A stretch of DNA of 64,000 nucleotides from Macrostomum hystrix (taxonomy: Eukaryota > Animalia > Platyhelminthes): NCBI GenBank assembly GCA_950097015.1, contig CATNEN010000010.1, positions 1,674,001 to 1,738,000 of the forward strand. The letters are read 5' to 3'. The notes below the pieces were generated by a model, which did not search any database, had not been told where the DNA came from, and saw only the letters and a list, made by a program, of their open reading frames with translations. How positions within the stretch are numbered: the stretch's first letter is position 1; each line of letters starts with the position of its first letter. Below are positions 8,801 to 27,900 of the stretch, one piece after another. Both the position numbers and the translations under genes were made by a program.

Positions 8801-11800
8801 GAGCATGCATAACCCTAGCATATGAGCATGCATAACCCTAGCTTATGAGCATGCATAACCCTAGCTTATGAGCATGCATAACCCTAGCTTATGAGCATGC
8901 ATAACCCTAGCTTATGAGCATGCATAACCCTAGCATATGAGCATGCATAACCCTACCTTATGAGCATGCATAACCCTAGCTTATGAGCATGCATAACCCT
9001 AGCTTATGAGCATGCATAACCCTAGCATATGAGCATGCATAACCCTACCTTATGAGCATGCATAACCCTAGCATATGAGCATGCATAAGCCTAGCATATG
9101 AGCATGCAGAACCCTAGCATATGAGCATGCATGACCCTAGCTTATGAGCATACATAACCCTAGCTTATGAGCATACATAACCCTAGCTTATGAGCATACA
9201 TAACCCTAGCTTATGAGCATACATAACCCTAGCTTATGAGCATACATAACCCTAGCTTATGAGCATGCATAACCCTAGCTTATGAGCATGCATAAGCCTA
9301 GCATATGAGCATGCATAAGCCTAGCATATGAGCATGCATAACCCTAGCATATGAGCATGCATAAGCCTAGCATATGAGCATGCATAACCCTAGCATATGA
9401 GCATGCATAACCCTAGAATATGAGCATGCATAAGCCTAGCATATGAGCATGCATAAGCCTAGCATATGAGCATGCATAACCCTAGCATATGAGCATGCAT
9501 TACCCTTGCGTATGAGCATGCATAAGCCTAGCATATGAGCATGCATAAGCCTAGCATATGAGCATGCATAAGCCTAGCATATGAGCATGCATAAGCCTAG
9601 CATATGAGCATGCATTACCCTTGCGTATGAGCATTTTATGCCAAAATTAGGCCTGTATATTATATCCTATGTATTTAATAGTCTACTACAAAAACCCTGT
9701 CCAGAAACAGTCGCAGATATAATTCACCTCCTCCTTGGCGGGCTTCTCGCACCCCAATGCGGCCCAAAACTCGGCCGGCTCGAAGCCCTCCATGGTGCTG
9801 ACAACCTCGGCGGCATTCTTTCGCTCGGTTTTGCGAATCCGATCGGCAATGAGGCGTGCCTTGGAGGCGGTCATGTGCTTGGCGGAGGCGCCAACCCAGA
9901 CAAACAGTGTGGTCTGAGCATCCAGCAGGTACACAAACTTCGGATCCAGCTCGGTCAGCGACAGCGGAACCGCCTGCAGGCGGACCGTCTGGGAGCCGCA
10001 AAGGCGATAGAGCCGGCAGGGCGGCTGGTCTTCAATCACCTAGAAGTTGTTGGGTTAAAAATGCGCAACATGTTATGAGCGCTACTTGAAGTAGCATAGT
10101 AAAGAAATTTACAAAAGTCCACAAATTCTTAACGCAGTCAAAATGAAACTACCCGCAAACATTAAAATTAAAGAAGGAAAAAATCGAACTAAGGAGACTA
10201 TAATTAAACTGTGAGGATAACGAAACTCGAAAGTTCAGATTGTAGGATAACACGGGATATAGGGGGGATAACTGTCAAACTGATGGGATAACACTGGAAT
10301 AACAGTCAAACTGATGGGATAACACTGGAATAACAGTCAAACTGATGGGATAACACTGGAATAACAGTCAAACTGATGGGATAACACTGGAATAACAGGC
10401 AAACTGATGGGATAACACTGCAATAACAGTCAAACTGATGGGATAACACTGGAATAACAGGCAAACTGATGGGATAACACTGGAATAACAGTCAAACTGA
10501 TGGGATAACACTGGAATAACAGTCAAACTGATGGGATAACACTGGAATAACAGTCAAACTGATGGGAGAACACTGGAATAACAGTCAAACTGATGGGATA
10601 ACACTGGAAAAACAGTCAAACTGATGGGATAACACTGGAATAACAGTCAAACTGAGGGGATAACACTGGAAAAACAGTCAAACTGATGGGATAACACTGG
10701 AATAACAGTCAAACTGAGGGGATAACACTGGAATAACAGTCAAACTGATGGGATAACACTGGAATAACAGTCAAACTGATGGGATAACACTGGAATAACT
10801 GTCAAACTGATGGGATAACACTGGAATAACTGTCAAACTGATGGGATAACACTGGAATAACAGTCAAACTGATGGGATAACACTGGAATAACAGTCAAAC
10901 TGATAAAATGGACATGTGGATGAAATGATGAGATCACAGTTTATAAAAATACGAGAACTAAAAAGATGGTAAGACAGCAGGTATCGTGTGGATGAGAAGT
11001 TAATGACATGAAAAAGTGCTCCCCCTCACCTGGAATAAGCCGGAGTTGGAGTGCTCGCCGTTCACAACCTGAATGCTGCCGCCGAACAGCGCCAGAAACT
11101 CCGGACTCTCCGCGTCCTCCTCTTCGCGCTGGGTCCGGCACTCGGCGCCCAGCAGGTTGCGCAGGTTGACGGCGTGCATGGAGGCGCAGAACAGCTTGTC
11201 GGTGGTGGCGTGGGACCCGATCCAGTAGTAGATGGTCCAGTCCAGGCTGCCGCTCTGCGTCTGGAAGGTGTTCAGCACGACGTAGCAGTCGCCGCGGAAG
11301 AACACCCCAATTAGATCCTTCTCGTCCACCGGGCGGGGATAGCGATCGTCGATCTCCCAGACTTCCAGGCCGGGGATCTGGCCGACAAGCTCGTCGAAGA
11401 TCTCGCCGTAATCCAGGTCCGGCTTGCGCAGGGCGTCCTTCCAGCTGCGCGACTTCACCGACTGAGCCTCGAACTGCTGGGTCTGCTTGGCCCGCGCCAC
11501 CTTCCGCATGCCGTCCAGCACCTTCCGGCTGCTCGTGTCGTCCCCGGAGCCGCCGGCGCCGGACTCGCTGCCGCTGTCGCGTCCGCGACGCTTCAACCGG
11601 CGCCAGCGAGCCGCCTGGTCCCGCTTGGCGTGGCCCGGAGCCGCAGCCGCCGCCGCAGCCCGCGTCGCCTGATCGCCGGCCAGCGGGCTGCCAGAGCGGA
11701 GCAGAGCGGCCTTCTTGTGCGTCTCCAGGGAGAAGTCCAGATTGTAGAAGGCCTTGCCAGCCCCGATCTGCATCTCCTTCTGTTGGAGCAGATTTTTGGG

Positions 11801-14800
11801 CGAAACAATGTCAGGCAAATTTGTAAGGTCAGTCATTATCTCAACCTTTAACTTCAGCTTGCTTAATGCGCTTTCCGTGTGCTTGTGTTCTATTATTATA
11901 CTAAAAAATTCTTCTTGTTCTTTCCTTCTCCTCAAATGTCTCCTGCTCGGTCATTACACTCTCTTTTTCAAGTCTACTGTTCATTCCCTATCCTTTCATT
12001 ACTCTCTCCACCATAATCTCATGGTTGGTCATTTCCCATAATCCTTTCCTCCAATGCCTGATTGTCGGTCATTACCCAATCCTTCCAATCCTTCCAGTGT
12101 CAGATTGTACTAGTGAGTGTCAGATTGTACTAGTGAGTGTCAGACTACTGCTGCGTGTCAGATTGTACTAGTGAGTGTCAGACTACTGCTGCGTGTCAGA
12201 TTGTACTAGTGAGTGTCAGATTGTACTAGTGAGTGTCAGACTACTGTTGCGTGTCAGATTGTACTAGTGAGTGTCAGATTGTATTAGTGAGTGTCAGATT
12301 GAACTGGTGAGTGTCAGAGTTACCCTATTTTTCAATGTCTCCTGGTCAATACTCTGTCTTCAAGTGTCTCATGCTCGGTTACTACCCTGTCTTCAAGTGT
12401 CTCATGCTCGGTTACTACCCTGTCTTCAAGTGTCTCATGATCGGTTACTACCCTGTCTTCAAGTGTCTCATGCTCGGTTACTACCCTGTCTTCAAGTGTC
12501 TCATGCTCGGTTACTACCCTGTCTTCAAGTGTCTCATGCTCGGTTACTACCCTGTCTTCAAGTGTATAATGCTCGGTCCTATATCATACAACCCTATCAG
12601 AAGTGTTTCCGGTTTAGTCATTACTACTCTTCCCCTATCATGAGGATGGTAATTTAGCCTCGCTGAAGGCCCCGACAGTAGAACATGAGATCAATAGAAA
12701 CTCACTGGCTTGGGCGGCAGCACCAGGTCGGGATTGTTGGCCACGTCGAACACATCCAGGGTCTCCTTCAGGTAATGAATAGCGTCTGGCAGGGTGAGCA
12801 GCCGGTTGCTGGCCAGGTAGAGGCGCCTGAGCTGGCCGCAGCGGCAGAGGCTCTCCGGTATGTTCTCCAGCAGGTTGTTCGCCACATTCAGCACCACCAG
12901 GCGCTCGAGTTTGCCGATGCCCTTCGGCATGCCAGCGAATGTCAGGCGATTGTCGCTGACGTAGAGTTTCCGCAGGTTGGACAGCTTGCACAGCGCGGCA
13001 GGCAGCTGCTCCAGTTTGTTGCCGGACACGTCCAGCACCTCCAGCTGCGGCCAGCTGTTGCTCATGGTGTCCAAAGAATTCAGGCCAGTTCCTTTTTAGA
13101 GTGTGCGAGAGTCTTGTGTGACAGTTTGAGATTCTAGCAGGAGATTTTCGATGCTATGAGATTCTAGCAGGAGATTTTACGATGCTATGAGATTCTAGCA
13201 GGAGATTTTATGATGCTATGAGATTCTAGCAGGAGATTTTATGATGCTATGAGATTCTAGCAGGAGATTTTTTATGATGCTATGAGATTCTAGCAGGATA
13301 TTTTATGATGGTATGAGATTCTAGCAGGAGATTTTATGATGCTATGAGATTCTAGCATGAGATTTTATGATGCTGTGAGATTCTAGCAGGAGATTTTATG
13401 ATGCTATGAGACTCTAGCAGGAGATTTTATGATGCTATGAGATTCTAGCAGGAGATTTTATGATGCTATGAGACTCTAGCAGGAGATTTTATGATGCTAT
13501 GAGATTCTAGCATGAGATTTTCTATAAAGGTTTCAGCCCTTTTATAATGATGAAATACTTTAGCAGTAGATTTTTATGATTATATTAAGCTAATAAGAGA
13601 TTTAGAATAATCATCTACAGTCCTCCGTCTACAGCTGTTGCAAGACTCACCGGCAAGGCTGAGGCGGCGCAGAGACCTGAGCTGGTAGAGTGCTTCCGGC
13701 AGCACTGGCAGGTCGTTGGATGCCAGGTCCAGGTCGACCAAGCGGCCCAGCTTCTCCAGCGACTCGGGAAAATTGGCCAGGGTTCGGCCGGTGTTGGCCA
13801 GATGCAGGGTCTCCAACTGCTTCAGAGCCATGATGGAGCGAAGCTGCGAGAGGCCCATCTCTGGATTGTTGGACAGCACCAGCTTGCGCAGATTGATGCA
13901 GCGGCGAAGCTGGGCGGGAACCTGGGTGGATATTAGCAATAAGACAAGCGCGAATGCTTTGAAAGTTTATATTAAACAGAGAAAAAATCTGAAGATCAGA
14001 TTGATCAGGAATCGGAGAAAACTGAAAAAAAAATTAATTTTCGAACTAGAAATCGTACTAAAAAATATAGAATAGATCCCAAAAAACTAACAAGGAATGG
14101 ACGAAAACCGGTTCTGGAATAGAATCTGACCAAGAAACCAATCAGGAATCTGACCAAGAAACCAATCAGGAATCTGACCAAGAAACCAATCAGGAATCTG
14201 ACCAAGAAACCAATCAGGAATCTGACCAAGAAACCAATCAGGAATCTGACCAAGAAACCAATCAGGAATCTGACCAAGAAACCAATCAGGAATCTGACCA
14301 AGAAACCAATCAGGAATCTGACCAAGAAACCAATCAGGAATCTGACCAAGAAACCAATCAGGAATCTGACCAAGAAACCAATCAGGAATCTGACCAAGAA
14401 ACCAATCAGGAATCTGACCAAGAAACCAATCAGGAATCTGACCAAGAAACTAATCAGGAATTGGGCAAATAAAATTAGTCAACGAATAAAACTGCCGAGA
14501 AAGTAATAGAAAATGCAAACAATAGTTCCATAAATACCCATTAACTCACCTGCTGCAGAGCGTTGTGACTGAGATCTAGGTACATCAGATCCGTACAGTT
14601 CACAAACAATTCCACTGGCACCTGCTCTATCTGGTTGTGGCTCAGGTTGAGCACCATCAGAGAGCGGCTGTGCTCAAGTGCGGTGGGAAACGAGCGCAGA
14701 CGATTGTGACTGAGGTCAACCACCTGCGGAAAATTAATGAGAATTAAGTATAAAAACTGTAAATTATACTTTTATGATAAATATGTTTATACTTTATTAC

Positions 14801-15819
14801 ACCTGCTTTCGGTTGGGCCAAATGTGCAGCCGACAGCACAGCCGCAGCTATTACACAGCGCATCTGAAGGCTGCGTACAGCTGTTCAGTCCATGGACTGG
14901 GGGAACGCCACACCCAACTTCAATTACCCCAGTTGATGCCAGTGGTACCCACTTAAGAGCTGGTTGAACCGAAGCAATGTATAGATTAAGAGTCTTGCTA
15001 AAGGATACAAATTGTTCCAGTGGAGTCGGGAATCGAACCCCCGACCTTCGAATCGTGAGTCCGACCAATCACTCCAACCACTAGGTTGAAACCCGCACGA
15101 ATCGATGACTAAATTATTATGACCTGCAATGACTGTAATATTGAGTTCGGCAGCAATGACTCCAATATTGAGTTCGGCAGCAATGACTCCAATATTGAGT
15201 TTGGCAGCAATGACTCCAATATTGAGTTCAGCAACAATGACTCCAATATTGAGTTCGGCAGCAATGACTCCAATATTGAGTTTGGCAGCAATGACTCCAA
15301 TATTGAGTTCAGCAACAATGACTCCAATATTGAGTTCAGCAACAATGACTCTAATATTGAGTTCAGCAGCAATGACTCTAATATTGAGTCCATCACTCTA
15401 TCGCAGTACACACCCACCTGCATGTCGGCAGTCTGAAAAAGGGTGTCTGGAATGCCCCCAGCCGTGATGGTATTGTGCCTGGCGTGGAGGCTCTTTAGCG
15501 AGGCCACGGTGCACAGCTCGCCATGCAGGTGAGTGAGCAGATTCCTATTCACGGACAGGTGCTCCAGGCGCTGCAGTTTGCCAACACGGTCGGGCACAAC
15601 TCGCAGACCAGCCGAGTTAGCGAACAGCCATTCGAGCCGAACCAGCCGGTCAAGGCCAGCGGGCAGATCGCCGGGCTCAGATTCGCCGTCAGATGCGGCT
15701 TCGCCTACTTCGTCCGAGTTGACGCGTCGGCGCCGGCGCCGGCTCTGCTGACTATCGCTGGCGTTGGTCTCGGACAGGTCGATGCCGCGCACGTAGGGCA
15801 GCACACTGCGCGAGGTCAT
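5832..15819 (-). CDS. FLII: Flightless-I (LRR + gelsolin repeats), 9 exons, about 1300 aa
   Basis: N-terminus [16 protein letters not shown] matches FLII VLPFVRGVDLS; LRRs followed by gelsolin motifs ([31 protein letters not shown]). Exons 15819-15418, 14723-14550, 13921-13651, 13091-12706, 11779-11030, 10039-9728, 8584-8016, 7160-6777, 6486-5832 all have GT-AG ends and sum to 3903 nt in frame. Confidence 0.93.
7280..7850. repeat. Compound intronic repeat: 12-bp GAAGAATCGA(C/T)C run plus a longer ~50-60-bp unit (FLII intron 7)
   Basis: Pure 12-mer run at about 7665-7820 beside GATGACTAAAACACATT(T/C)TACTAGGCAATAG units. Confidence 0.88.
8745..9632. repeat. 23-bp minisatellite (GCATAACCCTAGCTTATGAGCAT)n, FLII intron 6
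   Basis: Direct tandem copies. Confidence 0.94.
10265..10905. repeat. 31-bp minisatellite (TGATGGGATAACACTGGAATAACAGTCAAAC)n, FLII intron 5
   Basis: Direct tandem copies. Confidence 0.94.
12100..12570. repeat. Two adjacent arrays in FLII intron 4: 20/18-bp (GTGTCAGATTGTACTAGTGA) at about 12100-12320 and 33-bp (TGTCTTCAAGTGTCTCATGCTCGGTTACTACCC) at about 12345-12570
   Basis: Direct tandem copies; the 33-bp unit explains the 11-aa periodic ORFs at 12271 and 12311. Confidence 0.9.
13125..13520. repeat. 31-bp minisatellite (GAGATTCTAGCAGGAGATTTTATGATGCTAT)n, FLII intron 3
   Basis: Direct tandem copies. Confidence 0.93.
14120..14460. repeat. 24-bp minisatellite (CCAAGAAACCAATCAGGAATCTGA)n, FLII intron 2
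   Basis: Near-perfect tandem copies; source of the spurious (LVRFLIGF)n ORF. Confidence 0.95.
14793..15087 (-). mobile_element. Apparently full-length tRNA-derived SINE (about 295 bp), FLII intron 1
   Basis: Minus strand: A-box-like TAGTGGTTGGAGTG, B-box GGTTCGATTCC, CORE-like CCTTTAGCAAGACTCTTAA, palindrome CAGTCCATGGACTG, 3' end CAGGTGTAATAAA. Collinear with the copies at 21.0 and 45.9 kb. Confidence 0.78.
15130..15390. repeat. 27-bp minisatellite (AATATTGAGTTCGGCAGCAATGACTCC)n, FLII intron 1
   Basis: Direct tandem copies beginning about 30 nt from the exon 1 donor. Confidence 0.93.
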
Positions 15820-15910
15820 GGCCACTGCGGGGCGAGGGTTGGCGGCTCTTGAGATCACAACCTCGAGCTAGCAAGAGACGCTAGCGTTGGCTTAAGGACA
15901 TGCCTACCCG

Positions 15911-16510
15911 ACTCTACTCATCTACCCCTCTCTTCACTACCCATCTACCCCTCTCTTCACTACCCATCTACCCCTCTCTTCTCAACCCATCTACCCCTCT
16001 CTTCACTACCCATCTACCCCTCTCTTCACTACCCATCTATCCCTCTCTTCTCAACCCATCTACCCCTCTCTTCACTACCCATCTAACCCTCTCTTCACTA
16101 CCCATCTACCCCTCTCTTCACTACCCATCTAACCCTCTCTTCACTACCCATCTAACCCTCTCTTCACTACCCATCTAACCCTCTCTTCACTACCCATCTA
16201 CCCCTCTCTTCACTACCCATCTACCCCTCTCTTCACTACCCATCTACCCCTCTCTTCACTACCCATCTACCCCTCTCTTCTCAACCCATCTATCCCTCTC
16301 TTCACTACCCATCTACCCCTCTCTTCACTACCCATCTATCCCTCTCTTCACTACCCATCTAACCCTCTCTTCACTACCCATCTAACCCTCTCTTCTCAAC
16401 CCATCTAACCCTCTCTTCACTACCCATCTACCCCTCTCTTCACTACCCATCTAACCCTCTCTTCACTACCCATCTATCCCTCTCTTCTCAACCCATCTAC
16501 CCCTGTCTTC
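15911..16510. repeat. 23-bp G-free minisatellite (CTACCCATCTACCCCTCTCTTCA)n between ALKBH3 and FLII
   Basis: Tandem copies; no G seen on the + strand from 15911 to 16504. Confidence 0.92.
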
Positions 16511-16961
16511 TACAGGAATTGAGTTTCCTGTACTTAAAATAAAAAAACAAAGAGTAGCCAAGGTCACTGGGCGCTCTGATAAGTTAATCTGCACTTGAGT
16601 TGCTGCTGTTTGTATTTTACAATAAGACATTGTAGGATTTAGTAATGCAGTTAAGATAAAAAAGTAAAATTTAAATTTAAAATTAATTTACAATATTAAA
16701 AACTAATTCAAATTATCTTGCTACAAAACCGCAAACAGCAAAGCGAGAAGCTTCAAAATGTTGTTTTATTTAAAAAAATTGATTTTGAAAACAACGAAAA
16801 TAGATAAAATAATGGATAGATAATATATTTTACATTAGCTAAAACGGATCTGAATAATATAAGAAACTTAAAAACCGATTATCACAAGAGCAAGCGAGAG
16901 AGAAATGAAAAAATAGTTTAAAGCCAAATAGAGCGAGCAAGCAAAACTCCAAAAACTGCTG

Positions 16962-19900
16962 TCAAATCGCCAGGCCCGCCAGCAGGTTGTCAATGCCCCG
17001 CTGGCGTGGTGTTAGAAACAGGAAAACTGCTGGCGCGTGCGGCTCCGGCCGGCCCGACCGCCCGAGCTGACAGCGCCAGTCGGCGCCGAAGCCGTACAGC
17101 ATGGTGGCCGCGTCACCAGGCCGGAGGAAGACCCGGCCGGATCTGAGGTGGCCGCGAGCAGGACTGCTCAGTTGCTTCTCAATCTCCAGCGGTCGCTGCA
17201 GCACTACCTCGGGATCGCCCATGGCCAGCACTGGAATGAGGCGGAGATCAACTTAGCCTGAGTCTAGGCTCAGAATCTAGAATCAGATTAGAATTTGGGA
17301 TCAGCTGAAGATGAAGGGATTGAGAATTTGGGATCAGCTGACTGGAGATGAATGGATTGGGAAGTAGGGATCAGCTGACTGGAGATGAATGGATTGGGAA
17401 GTAGGGATCAGCTGACTGGAGATGAATGGATTGGGAAGTAGGGATCAGCTGACTGGAGATGAATGGATTGGGAAGTAGGGATCAGCTGACTGGAGATGAA
17501 TGGATTGGGAAGTAGGGATCAGCTGACTGGAGATGAATGGATTGGGAAGTAGGGATCAGCTGACTGGAGATGAATGGATTGGGAAGTAGGGATCAGCTGA
17601 CTGGAGATTAAGGGATTGGGAAGTAGGGATCAGCTGACTGGAGGTGAAGGGATTGAGAATTTGGGATCAGCTGACTGGAGATGAATGGATTGGGAAGTAG
17701 GGATCAGCTGACTGGAGATTAAGGGATTGGGAAGTAGGGATCAGCTGACTGGAGATTAAGGGATTGGGAAGTAGGGATCAGCTGACTGGAGATTAAGGGA
17801 TTGGGAAGTAGGGATCAGCTGAAGATGAAGGGATCGGGAAGAAAAGATCAGATGATGGGAGATGAAGGGACTGAGAAGTAGGGATCAGCTGATTAGAGGT
17901 AAGGGGATTGGGAAGTAGGGATCAGCTGATTAGAGGTAAGGGGACTGGAAAGTAGGGATCAGCTGATTAGAGGTAAGGGGACTGGGAAGTAGGGATCAGC
18001 TGATTAGAGGTAAGGGGACTGGGAAGTAGGGATCAGCTGATTAGAGGTAAGGGGACTGGAAAGTAGGGATCAGCTGATTAGAGGTAAGGGGACTGGGAAG
18101 TAGGGATCGGATTTATAATATGTAAAAGTACAAAGGCGACGGCGAACCTGTGATGAATGTCTCCTCGCCGGTGTCTTCGTCAACCGAGGCGGGTCCGCTG
18201 CGCCACGGCAGGTGCTGGGAGCCATGATTAAAGCGAACGGCTGCAATGTGCTGGTAGGGACCAAATTTCAACCGATCGTTGCCCGTCACCTTGGCCAGAG
18301 CGACGGCGAGGCGGCTAAACGAAGGCGAGATCGACTGGGAAGCGGCGATGCTGAGCTCAGCCAGATCGCAGGAGCCGGCATCGCGCCACTGCAGGCGGTT
18401 CAGGGCCTCCGTGGCCTCGGCGACCAGGTCAGGCCCCGCCTCCGACGCAAGCGGTGATCTGCGCCCGGGTAGAGAGGAAATGACAGAGGGGGAACCTGAA
18501 GTTGATCTCGTACAATAAAATTAATTCTCCTGTCTTGTGGCCCATAGAAGCTTTTATACTTTTTTTAGATGATGGGATCTGAATGACTTAACTACGAACA
18601 TGGGAATCAGATGATGGGATCTGAATGACTTAACTACGAACATGGGAATCAGACGATGGGATCTGAATAACTTAACTACGAACATGGGAATCAGATGATG
18701 GGATCTGAATGACTTAACTACGAACATGGGTATCAGACGATGGGATCTGAATAACTTAACTACGAACATGGGAATCAGATGATGGGATCTGAATAACTTA
18801 ACTACGAACATGGGAATCAGATGATGGGATCTGAATAACTTAACTACGAACATGGGAATCAGATGATGGGATCTGAATAACTTAACTACGAACATGGGAA
18901 TCAGATGATGGGATCTGAATAACTCGATCCCAAGAATTGGAACAATATGATTGGATTTTAATGATTCAATATTTAAAATATGGTATCAAATCGTTTGGAT
19001 ATCAGCAACATGGGCGCTAATCATTGGGATCAGGATAGATCGCAAAGATCAGTGAAACAGTGAGTTCACAGCTCACACTCGCCCACCTATAGCAGCACAG
19101 CTGAGCCGACAGCCTGCCAGGCCTTGAGGACAGCTCAACAACGCGATTTTCATTGCCAACCCCCGGCCTGATCTCCAGCTTCTCAGACGGTTCGTGCTCA
19201 ATCACCCTGAAGGTGAGATTCACCCTGACTGTCTTGTCGTGATACTCGGGTGGCACCGAGTGCAGCCAGTCCTCCTGCAGTGAGCCGCGCATCACCAGCA
19301 GGTCGCCGGACTGCAGCGGCACGGTGACGGGGTCGCCGATCAGCGGCTTGACGGTCTGGACCCGATTGTCACGCCGGCGTAGCAGAAAATTGCGTGTCTC
19401 TCCAAACGATAGCGACGCGATGACCGGATGCCGGCCAAGGCTGGGCTCGTCGTCCGAGTGCCAGCCGATCTTGTCCTTGCCGTCGCGGTACAGATTGCAC
19501 ATCACCGAGTTGAACTCTACGCCCAGCTTGTTGGCTAGGCGGGTCTTCAGCTCGATTAGCACCTGCAGGAGGTCAGGTTGTAACCTTGTGCAAGCAAGGA
19601 GCTTTGGAAATCTGATCGAGAGGTCGGGGGTTCGAGTCTCAGCTCACCCAAATAAGAAATCGGTTGACATTCGGATGGGTCTGGCGGCCTAGGATGACGA
19701 TTGCCTGCGCACAATTGACTGCACGACAACTGCCTGCGGCGACAGGCTCATTTATGACGTTTCCTAGGTGGTAGTGTTAGTTCCTAGGTGGTATTATACC
19801 AACCACTGAAGTACTGAAGTACTTTGACTATTTCCTTTGTTGGTATAATTCACTAGCAACGTCACAGCAGTCAATTGTGCCCAGGCAATCGTTGTAGAAC

Positions 19901-20530
19901 CGGTTCTAGCAGCCCCAACCCCTGTGTATGTTTTCTATTATCTCTCTTAGGCCCTAATTAGGTCACGAGTTCGAATCCGAGCGAATTCAGGCGAATTAAT
20001 TAATCAGAGTTTGTCACCTGTGGCCAAACATCGTCAGTAGCTTCCCATTTCACGTGGCTGTAAGTGTAGGGCCTGCCGTACCAGCAGGTCTGCCTGGGCT
20101 CCGGATAAGGCTTGCCGTCGCGGTCCAGGCCAGTGCGCACCTGCCAAGGCAGCCGCATCAGGTCGGCCAGGATTCGCTGGCTCTCACCGCCGGCCCGGAT
20201 GAAGTTCCGCTCCAGCTGCACCCGGGCTTCGACCTTGCCGGCGCCAACGCTCAGGTCGTAGACACCGTCGGATTCTATCGTGACAGGCTTGCCGAGGAAC
20301 TCGGCCTCACGCGCCAGGTCCTCTTTTACTCTGTTGTCAAAGACGAACTGCCCCTGACCAGCGGCTGTTGATGTCTGTAGCTGCTGCTGCTGTTGCTGTT
20401 GCTGCTCATTCTCAGCGTTGTCTGCATTATTTTTCTGACTGCCTCCGGCGCCCCCAGGCCGCCTGGCCGGTCCGCTGTTCCAACCGGACTGAACTCGGTT
20501 CTGGCGCCGCCTGTCAGATTTGCTGCTCAT
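16962..20530 (-). CDS. ALKBH3: ALKBH3-like 2OG-Fe(II) demethylase with a second degenerate AlkB domain; 4 exons, about 522 aa
   Basis: Exons 20530-20018 and 19562-19087 match ALKBH3 closely (RRRQNRVQSGW, PRQTCWYG.PYTYS, CNLYRDGKDKIGWHSDDEPSLG, DWLHSVPPEYH, RVNLTFR). Exons 18458-18148 and 17230-16962 join in frame via phase-2 and phase-1 GT-AG introns (1569 nt total). Core call is high confidence; the extension is moderate. Confidence 0.85.
17290..18110. repeat. 37-bp minisatellite (GGGATCAGCTGACTGGAGATGAATGGATTGGGAAGTA)n, predicted ALKBH3 intron 3
   Basis: Tandem copies, with a variant block (GATTAGAGGTAAGGGG) at the right end. Confidence 0.93.
18560..18925. repeat. 42-bp minisatellite (CATGGGAATCAGATGATGGGATCTGAATAACTTAACTACGAA)n, predicted ALKBH3 intron 2
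   Basis: Tandem copies; explains the 14-aa periodic ORF. Confidence 0.93.
19697..19892. mobile_element. Hairpin MITE-like element (about 196 bp), ALKBH3 intron 1
   Basis: Terminal inverted repeat ACGATTGCCTG(C/G)GCACAATTGACTGC (25/26 match) plus inner inverted blocks TGACGTT..CTAG and ATTATACCAAC. No clear TSD. Confidence 0.65.
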
Positions 20531-21033
20531 TTGGTGAGACGGAGTTTTTCTTTTCAGTTGAATTGATTCGCCAAATCTGTAGCTTAATTATGGCCGCTTA
20601 ACATCAGTGCTGAAAATGAATCAATTTATTCTAAAACAAGACAACTGGATTAAGCGATGGGTAACAACTGTAGATAATAATAACAACAACAATATAACTG
20701 CTCATTCTATCATACAACTGCTTAAGTGTATCATCTAGAGACATACAACTAAAATATTTTTTCAGCATGCTGTGATCCCAACTCATAGCTCATTCATATT
20801 TATCAATATTGATACTTCTATATTCTATTTTTGTAGCTTTGTAGCAATCACATAGCACCTTTATTAATACTATCACAGTAATAATTTGATCCACCTTTCA
20901 TCTTAAATCTTAATGCAGCCTTGCAATAATCTCATAGTTGGTTAGCAGCTTCAGTTGCAAAGGCCTATTATAGATAGTGCTAACTTGGCAATAATTCAAT
21001 ATTAGCTTAAATAGTGAACTTAGGAGCAGCTTC

Positions 21034-24957: not shown

Positions 24958-27900
24958 ATGACCTCGGAGGCCGTTAAAGTAATTGTGCGGTGCCGACCGC
25001 TCAATCAGCGTGAGAAGGATCTGAACTGTGAAACTGTGGTCAGCATGGAAAGTGCTCGGGGCCAGTGTGCTATCGTTAACCCGTCAGACAGTAAGGCGCC
25101 ACCGAAGGTGTTCTTTTTTGATGGCGCCTACTTCACAGACTCAACAACCGACAATATCTACGCAGACATAGCATACCCTCTGGTTGAGGGCGTCACCGAG
25201 GGCTACAATGGCACAATCTTTGCCTACGGCCAGACCGGCTGCGGCAAGTCCTTCTCAATGCAGGGCATCACAGATCCAGCCTCGCAGCGCGGCATTATTC
25301 CCAGGTTGGAAGCTCGTGAGACATTGTGGGGGCAGCAGCAGATCCCTGCTTTAAAAGCTATTTAAGCAACCTTGCTAGAGAGATGGGTCGTCCACCATAA
25401 GATGGGAAATTTAACGACACATCTAAACACCCACAAGTTACATGCTCGTAAATACGAGTTACCTACAGACATTAGGTAGCGTCATGGCTAACAAGCCTAG
25501 ACTTTTTAATTATCTGGCATAGCTAACACTCACTGTTATTCTACTCGTAGATTGTGGTTAAGTTCATAATACGCGTCGTGCCTGCAAATTCGTGTTCCGT
25601 TAATTTCCTCTTTGGTAAAACCAGGGCGTTCGATCACATCTTCGAGACCATCTCGGTGGCTCAGTCATCGAAGTTCCTTGTGCACGCCTCCTACCTGGAG
25701 ATCTACAATGAGGAGATTCGTGACCTGCTGGGCAAGGATGTTAAGGCCAAGATGGACTTGAAGGAACACCCGGAAAAGGGTGTCTATGTCTCTGGGCTCT
25801 CAATGCACAAGGTTAGTGAGGGTAATGGACTAGAAATATTGCTGAGTGAAATTTCTAGCTCTCAGTGAATCATGAGCGGCGAAATAAACTCAACCAGGTA
25901 ACGAACGTGCGCGAGTGCCAGGTGGTGATGGAACGCGGCTGGAAGAACCGCGCCACTGGAGCTACGCTGATGAACGCTGACAGCTCAAGGTCACACTCGA
26001 TATTCACCATCTACCTGGAGTGCGCCGAGTGGGATGATCAGGGCGAGGAGCACATCAGGGCCGGCAAGCTCAACCTAGTCGACCTGGCGGGCTCCGAGAG
26101 GCAGTCAAAGACTGGCGCCACAGGCGACCGACTGAAAGAGGCCACGAAGATCAACTTGTCGCTCAGTGCGCTGGGCAACGTCATCAGCGCCCTGGTTGAT
26201 GGCAAGAGCAAGCACATCCCCTATCGAGACAGCAAACTTACGAGGCTTCTGCAGGTACCTGCTGACTGCCTTGTTAAGCAGTGCCGTGCCCCAATGCCAC
26301 AGATTCCCTTAGATTCCCTACACTCTTCAAACCTCCATCCAAAACCAAGGACTCCCTGGGCGGCAACACCAAGACACTGATGGTGGCCTGTCTGAGCCCG
26401 GCGGACAACAACTACGACGAGACGCTGAGCACGCTACGCTACGCCAACCGTGCCAAGAACATCCAGAACAAGCCCAAGATCAACGAGGACCCGAAAGACG
26501 CTCTGCTTCGCCAGTACCAGGAGGAGATTGAGAAGCTAAAAGCCATCCTGGCCGGCCACCTGGGAGATCCCAGTCAGCTGGCCGCACTGCTGGGCGGAGC
26601 CACCGCCCTGGCCAGTCAGCAGAAGTCGCCGAAGCATCAACAGAGAGGCGGGGGCGACGATGCGGGGCATCGCGAGGCGCTTGAAGCAGAGAAGGAACAG
26701 CTGAGGCTGGTGAGTGCAGATAATAGAGGGGAGATATGAGAGAGATGAGAGAGGGAAAGAGGGGAGAGAGAGGAGAGAGGAGAGAGATGAGAGAGAGGAG
26801 AGATGAGAGTAGAGGGGAGAGATGAGAGACGAGAGATGAGAGAGGGGAGCTTTCATGCATCTGGCTGTAAGCCCAGTGTTTTCGGACCTTTGTTTCAGAG
26901 GCTTTTAAATGGTTACACATATTACGAGTAAGAAGGGTTCAGTTGTTGAATTTTTCGCAGAATTATTTCAACACAGACGGACATTTGTGACTCCACCCAA
27001 ACCGACTTTTACAAATGCGGAGCCGGCACTGTCATGCCCCAATCCCGAACCCGCAGGAATACGAAGAGAAGCTGAAGGCCAAGGAGGCGGCATTCGCTGT
27101 TGAAGCCGCGGACAGGGTGAAGCTGCAGGACGACATCAACAAGCTGAAGAGCTACTACGACTCAAAACTGGCCCAGCTTGAGGAGAGTGTCGCCTCTCCG
27201 GATGAGGGTGAGAGCGGCAGTACAGTATGTGCGAAGTTGCCATTATTCTCTATCAATGAGCCAAAATTCTGAACTAACCCTAAGTCTGGACATCCCAATG
27301 TACACCTGTTCCGTAACTCACGCTTCTCATTCCCATCGTGCCATCGCCAATCAGTGCTCGCCAGATCTGCCAGCGTGAACGCAGAGGTGGCAGCGGAGCT
27401 GCTGCGGCTGGAGTGTGAGTGACCGCTCAGGACAAAGTCTGAGAAACGAGATCGTGTCTCGGCTATTTCTCGTGTTTTATTATTTTTTTTTTGGAGAAAG
27501 TCGGATTTTTTGCTTCTATTATTTGCACACGGACGCGAGAGGCTTTGAGTTTTTGCGCTCTGTCTGCACTTTTTTGTGCTTCAATTCCTTAGCCATCATC
27601 CAATGGGTCTTTTGCAATTTAGTGCTTTACTAAATTCAATAGAGTAAATCATCAGTATAGGCTTGGAGTTTGGCTGGTAATTACAACGCAGCATCTCGCT
27701 TCTGTGTGTTTCACTTGTCAGCTTTTTTAATATTTGCACGCTTTTGCGCAGAGAAGATTAACTTTATTCAAGGTCGTGCAAAATCCCTTGCTATACATCA
27801 CATTTGCTCACGAGATTTTAGACTTATCGCTTGCCGATAGAAATTATTGAATTAATTTTGATTCATAGTGCAAAAAATGACACGCATCGAACCGAAATCT

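Follow-up and report, generated by a model that had tools for sequence, protein, structure and literature searches.

Gene structure and transcripts at the ALKBH3 locus

We analysed an ALKBH3 locus of the flatworm Macrostomum hystrix, which lies on the minus strand of a 64,000-nucleotide (nt) stretch of contig CATNEN010000010.1 (positions 1,674,001 to 1,738,000; hereafter the window, whose own numbering is used throughout). ALKBH3, a well-studied repair enzyme that also demethylates RNA, is very uniform in build, with a single domain and a length of about 286 amino acids (aa). An initial annotation of this DNA had proposed that the reading frame runs on beyond the enzyme through two further exons, yielding a stop-free protein of 522 aa whose second half is a duplicated, catalytically dead AlkB domain. 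We find that the locus is transcribed and spliced as a four-exon mRNA that carries a trans-spliced leader and encodes 522 aa, and comparative analyses lead us to favour, with some caution, the view that the additional half arose long ago by tandem duplication of the ALKBH3 domain and became a pseudo-enzyme.

Transcript evidence consisted of assembled contigs rather than raw reads, taken from two samples of one study (X3 and X4) and from a second study (X2); minor isoforms may escape contigs of this kind. Two contigs span all four exons, one of 1712 nt from X3 (depth 45) and one of 1758 nt from X4 (depth 38); both are placed at 16876-17230, 18148-18458, 19087-19559/62 and 20015/18-20587/20610 with 0-1 mismatches and no indels, and all three joints, CT..AC when read on the plus strand, correspond to GT..AG on the minus strand. 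The two junctions that had been predicted from the frames, 19087 to 18458 and 18148 to 17230, are joined at exactly these positions in the contigs of both samples. Within intron 2 lies an in-frame stop (19017-19019) that would end a two-exon protein, and that is removed by splicing in the observed mRNA. Termination at this stop without a junction into 18458 finds no support among the assembled contigs: the junction is present, and 18752-19045 is covered by no contig.

At position 20610 the X4 contig and a 92-nt X2 contig both carry 23 loose letters. Read as their reverse complement, and together with a shared G, these letters are identical to the 3′ terminus of the 35-nt spliced leader (SL) published for Macrostomum lignano (PMC8629364). 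Because the leader is joined at an AG acceptor (20611-20610, genomic ttttcag/cactg), the contigs represent mature SL-trans-spliced mRNAs, of the order SL, exon 1, exon 2, exon 3, exon 4. After the terminal ATG of the leader the frame continues with CAC TGA; the leader therefore does not lengthen the open reading frame (ORF).

Exon 1 (20018-20609) comprises a 5′ untranslated region (UTR; 20609-20531) and, from the ATG at 20530, a coding part that extends to 20018 (171 codons) and encodes an N-terminal tail and the N-terminal half of the AlkB domain. Its end was corrected to 20018, with the GT at 20017-20016; the joint from 19559/62 to 20015/18 conforms to GT..AG with the cut at +3. Exon 2 (19087-19562), supported by Pfam and PDB matches and by the contig joint, holds the catalytic AlkB core with the motifs WHSDDE, DWLHS and RVNLTFR, followed by a 39-aa tail with which the extension opens. 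Exon 3 (18148-18458; 311 nt, entered in phase 2), to which both the contigs and the M. lignano match described below attest, is open over 103 codons (18457-18148) and encodes the N-terminal half of the extension, with HLPWRS opposite the HxD region of the first domain. Exon 4 (16876-17230) is coding from 17230 to 16962, its frame being free of stops between 17228 and the TGA at 16964-16962, with a 3′ UTR that runs to about 16876; its product is the C-terminal half of the extension (LAMGD, FLRPGDA, GFGADWRC, AVFLFLT). The coding parts sum to 513+476+311+269 = 1569 nt, that is, 522 aa and a stop, and both frames and spliced contigs bear out the length originally proposed. The predicted phases hold as well (AG/GT at the exon 2 donor, 19087/19086; CAG/ before 18458; G/GT at 18148/18147; CAG/ before 17230), and frame translation agrees that exon 3 has no in-frame ATG of its own.

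Both additional introns contain minisatellites, as had been noted. Intron 2 (18459-19086; 628 nt) holds 8.5 copies of a 42-bp unit at 18567-18924, and intron 3 (17231-18147; 917 nt) holds 21.8 copies of a 37-bp unit at 17305-18108. The introns are rich in stops and have a GC content of 0.40-0.48, compared with 0.65-0.67 in exons 3 and 4, and the GC content at third codon positions (GC3) of the reading frame in these two exons (0.75-0.76) is akin to that of exons 1 and 2 (0.72-0.79). Each of exons 3 and 4 is present as a single copy in the 220-Mb assembly; with single-copy exons and introns in place, an origin as a processed retrocopy is excluded. A tRNA within intron 1 was also considered and ruled out. 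The 3′ flank at 16300-16510 holds a further minisatellite, such that the units across flank, intron 3 and intron 2 measure 23, 37 and 42 bp and are G/C-skewed; GC skew falls to -1.0 at 16100-16399 and rises to +0.65 in intron 3.

A complete ALKBH3 domain in the first half of the protein

Searches with the window were run exon by exon, and a 511-aa protein of M. lignano, listed in UniRef as 'Fe2OG dioxygenase domain-containing protein' and here called P0001, served as a full-length proxy. Exon 2 alone matched the Pfam AlkB family PF13532 at 1.3e-26 (94.5 bits; cut-off 31.2), and P0001 reached 117 bits. In a PDB sequence search, human ALKBH3 structures (2iuw, 8jnr) matched this first domain at 1e-36 and about 45% identity, compared with 5e-18 for ALKBH2, and among the top 120 database matches those with a source name were nearly all called ALKBH3. 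The Fe(II) triad HxD...H and the RxxxxxR motif for 2-oxoglutarate (2OG) are both present when aligned to the sequence of the human structure. By these criteria residues about 60-290 are a complete, catalytically equipped AlkB/ALKBH3 domain. The locus is the single ALKBH3 orthologue of this flatworm.

Where the protein departs from its relatives is at the end of this domain. Known ALKBH3 proteins stop a few residues after NLTFR, whereas the flatworm protein runs about 230 residues further by way of the two extra exons. The other ALKBH3 orthologues that we retrieved measure 281-345 aa, with one exception, a 600-aa bird model with reductase domains.

The extension is conserved in Macrostomum lignano

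When exon 3 was searched with phmmer against 1.84 billion representative sequences, one true relative emerged, namely P0001 (8.9e-22). This protein is collinear with all four exons and across every junction, with identities of 54% in the N-terminal tail, 63% in the N-terminal half of the AlkB domain and 88% in the catalytic core, and of 64%, 66% and 72% in the exon 2 tail, exon 3 part and exon 4 part of the extension. The extension is therefore conserved about as well as the non-catalytic half of the first domain and better than the N-terminal tail, and its frame is intact in both species. The suggestion that orthologues be checked is answered by this comparison: the same extension, 64-72% identical, exists in a second species. 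The UniRef entry already includes the extra exons but has only a single PF13532 domain annotated, and its C-terminal half is otherwise undescribed. Beyond M. lignano, searches of 1.8-5.8 billion proteins yielded neither a further protein nor a fragment similar to the extension. The extension appears, on these comparisons, to be lineage-specific as far as the searched databases reach and conserved at the level of the genus.

A second M. lignano entry, P0004 (415 aa), is the same as P0001 as far as the exon 2 donor and has a different sequence beyond it. This tail matches exon-2-like DNA translated in the antisense direction (BLASTP 2e-11; compared with window 19324-19692 on the plus strand), a pattern that suggests a mis-modelled locus at which part of exon 2 is duplicated in inverted orientation in the polyploid M. 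lignano genome.

Comparison of the extension with the AlkB domain

We compared the extension with AlkB domains by profile-profile alignment in hhalign, using profiles from which the shared exon 2 tail had been trimmed before scoring. Against a profile of ALKBH3 orthologues alone the score was 17.6 (P 0.076), and it climbed to 22.9 (P 0.009-0.012) on broadening the profile to 36 ALKBH3 sequences and 20 AlkB paralogues of this genome. By default this alignment spans 101-163 columns, and at low mact 197 of about 220; it begins with the first element of each domain and ends with the last one, and it reproduces, in order, all six blocks that had been aligned by eye in the initial annotation. Shuffling did not recover the observed score: none of 78 column shuffles (mean 13.1, standard deviation 2.2, maximum 18.1) and none of 69 shuffles of 12-column blocks (mean 15.2, maximum 21.6) came to 22.9 or above, and the reversed query scored 12.1. 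When the AlkB sequences were split by group, the ALKBH3 group scored 18.9 over 100 columns, compared with 9-15.6 over fewer than 35 columns for the other AlkB paralogue groups, and this specificity favours an internal duplication over the capture of another AlkB gene. Descent from other AlkB paralogues of the genome was rejected, given that the best hhalign score is with the ALKBH3 group and that exons 3 and 4 have no paralogue.

Other methods yielded signals in the same direction. BLASTP of exon 2, which contains the core of the first domain, against exon 4 gave an E-value of 0.021 in the register proposed earlier, and the same register was found independently between the two halves of P0001 (E 0.23). 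A hidden Markov model of ALKBH3 scored -1.5 bits on the whole extension with hmmsearch, a value reached by 29 of 1000 shuffles, and 0.3 bits on the last 91 residues, where the extension beat 995 of 1000 shuffles and 5 reached it. In a language-model feature search with residues 296-511 of P0001, 25 of the 30 neighbour clusters carried PF13532, with scores of 0.92-0.94.

Several observations weigh against an AlkB origin. Pfam gave no PF13532 match to the extension, whether with each exon or with the C-terminal half of P0001, even at E<=10; a genome-wide PF13532 scan did not list exons 3 and 4; and PDB searches with the extension, by single sequence and by profile, returned no AlkB chain and only unrelated weak matches. 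Our first, untrimmed hhalign run produced a trivial self-match through the shared exon 2 tail and nothing else, and the probability that hhalign assigns to the trimmed alignment is only 3.6-4.4%; its P of about 0.01 is significant for one comparison planned in advance and falls below the standard of a database search. The language-model result is worth little if context from the first domain leaked into features computed on the whole protein and is striking only if the extension was embedded alone, and an ESM-atlas search with exon 4 alone had no usable match. Intron positions in the extension differ from those in the first domain, and the comparison that shows the extension to be conserved involves two species only. 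Finally, when AlphaFold2 modelled the extension from the two-species alignment, the confidence (predicted local distance difference test, pLDDT) was 36.7 and no usable fold resulted. A control with full-length P0001 and the same shallow alignment reached a pLDDT of 35.7 and left the genuine AlkB domain mostly below 50; because the genuine domain failed too, the low values are attributable to the shallow alignment and are uninformative as to the fold of the extension. The earlier claim of a duplicated AlkB domain is in this sense partly upheld: the collinear profile alignment (P about 0.01, 0 of 147 shuffles) and the PF13532 neighbours of the language model speak for it, and Pfam, PDB and BLASTP did not reach significance.

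In the hhalign register, the catalytic residues of the first domain have no counterpart in the extension. Both species have Arg where HxD has its His, Cys (in the window) or Tyr (in M. lignano) stands in place of the distal His, RxNLTFR corresponds to AVFLFLT with the loss of both Arg residues of RxxxxxR, and the NxY motif is gone. These losses had been proposed for HxD, the distal His and the 2OG Arg, and they are found at the aligned positions. An alignment gap of 18 residues lies opposite the conserved PYTYS stretch of the first domain; otherwise the two segments share the same element order and are of similar length (about 219 residues in the extension and 227 in the first domain). If the extension is indeed derived from AlkB, it would be unable to bind Fe(II) and 2OG in the manner of AlkB enzymes and hence would not be an oxygenase.

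Alternative explanations

The most serious alternative, which we consider possible though clearly less likely than a degenerate ALKBH3 copy, is that the extension is a real, conserved and translated C-terminal domain unrelated to AlkB, either novel to the lineage or captured, and that the similarity reflects chance and a shared alpha/beta periodicity. The negative Pfam, PDB and first-pass hhalign results would all be expected to look as they do in this case, as would an hhalign probability below 5%, the lack of any homologue outside Macrostomum in 1.8-5.8 billion proteins, and an alignment that has no motif to anchor it since every catalytic residue is absent. Such a chance resemblance is, however, difficult to square with a score that neither the 147 shuffles nor the reversed query attained, with an alignment that runs end to end between two domains equal in length, with similarity specific to the ALKBH3 group, and with the predominance among language-model neighbours of PF13532, the very family specified a priori.

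One may also postulate that exons 3 and 4 are what is left of a once separate gene downstream, for instance a second ALKBH3 copy in tandem or a neighbour within an operon, which read-through splicing joined to ALKBH3, and that the tail is now largely functionless and slowly decaying. The absence of an ATG in exon 3 and the loss of all catalytic residues are compatible with such a history, the donor at 19087 lies 39 codons beyond the normal end of ALKBH3 with the intronic stop 70 nt further on, and flatworm operons and SL trans-splicing ease fusions of this kind (PMC8629364). We nevertheless regard a decaying remnant as improbable: the extension is conserved like the N-terminal half of the true domain and more than the N-terminal tail, its frame is intact in both species with GC3 like that of the other exons, and assembly yielded the spliced form alone, at full depth.

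That the four-exon form is an artefact of assembly or splicing, and that the real protein stops at 19017, is very improbable even though the evidence comes from contigs rather than raw reads and both full-length contigs derive from one study, because the same canonical GT..AG joints occur in two samples with the spliced leader on the same contig, the retained-intron stop is covered by no contig, these junctions recur in an independent gene model of M. lignano, and the single-copy status of exons 3 and 4 argues against a retrocopy.

Neighbouring genes and AlkB-bearing repeats

About 1 kb downstream of the locus, in the same orientation, lies a gelsolin-repeat gene (11000-15858, minus strand) that may share an operon with the trans-spliced ALKBH3 gene. 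A kinesin motor gene (24958-26380, plus strand) lies upstream in the opposite orientation. Neither neighbour has a bearing on the findings for the extension.

Elsewhere in the genome we counted about 75 matches to PF13532, 65 of them above the cut-off. Many lie within intronless open frames of 700-1100 aa that recur as identical copies and as tandem units of ~6.4 kb, for example on contig C29 at 3.90-3.93 Mb and on contig C12 at 3.68-3.69 Mb. At one such locus (L004, G000:C29:3924000-3932000), a 922-aa AlkB ORF is flanked on one side by an RVT_1 reverse-transcriptase ORF and on the other by an Exo_endo_phos endonuclease ORF, all on the same strand. Judged by this arrangement, the repeats look like a family of non-LTR (long terminal repeat) retrotransposons that carries an AlkB domain. 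The capture of AlkB has been described for Ty3/Gypsy elements of orchids (PMC9289625), and we found no report in the literature of AlkB capture by LINE-like (long interspersed nuclear element) elements of flatworms.

Discussion

Our preferred explanation for these results is that the ALKBH3 domain was duplicated in tandem and that the second copy kept its length and element order while it lost the Fe(II) triad, both 2OG Arg residues, the NxY motif and the 18-residue segment opposite PYTYS. We hold this to be somewhat better than an even proposition on the profile comparisons and shuffles described above. In such a scenario the second copy would survive as a non-catalytic module kept under constraint, and its likeliest role, speculatively, would be to serve as a scaffold or to bind single-stranded nucleic acid or a partner on its surface, while packing against the active domain or regulating it. 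A more specific version, which we put forward as a rather unlikely conjecture, is that the degenerate module acts as a cofactor-free 'reader' or clamp that grips DNA or RNA in single-stranded form, or else a helicase partner, and passes substrates to the active domain, such that a built-in pseudo-enzyme regulator would have arisen by tandem duplication in Macrostomum.

Two known systems offer partial parallels. Some ciliate homologues of the ALKBH5-type DMT3 have two tandem AlkB domains (PMC12974511), and they share with our reading the arrangement of AlkB followed by AlkB in one polypeptide. They differ in belonging to the ALKBH5 subfamily, in being found in unicellular eukaryotes and in that both of their domains are recognisable, whereas the putative second copy in the flatworm lies beyond Pfam detection and is without cofactor ligands. 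The pseudokinase domain JH2 of the JAK kinases is an example of a pseudoenzyme domain fused to its active paralogue. This class shares a duplicated fold, lost catalytic residues and a position beside the active copy; in the flatworm case both the fold and any regulation are putative. A search of the literature turned up no description of an ALKBH3 in which a degenerate AlkB-like module follows the first domain.

For annotation, the locus illustrates that a stop just past the end of a conserved domain can mask real downstream exons in the repeat-laden introns of flatworms. If the proposed origin is correct, this gene would be a clean case of the birth of a pseudo-enzyme through tandem duplication, in an otherwise uniform ALKBH3. 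Macrostomum is amenable to RNA interference and transgenesis, and the role of the module would be directly testable there because these methods exist.
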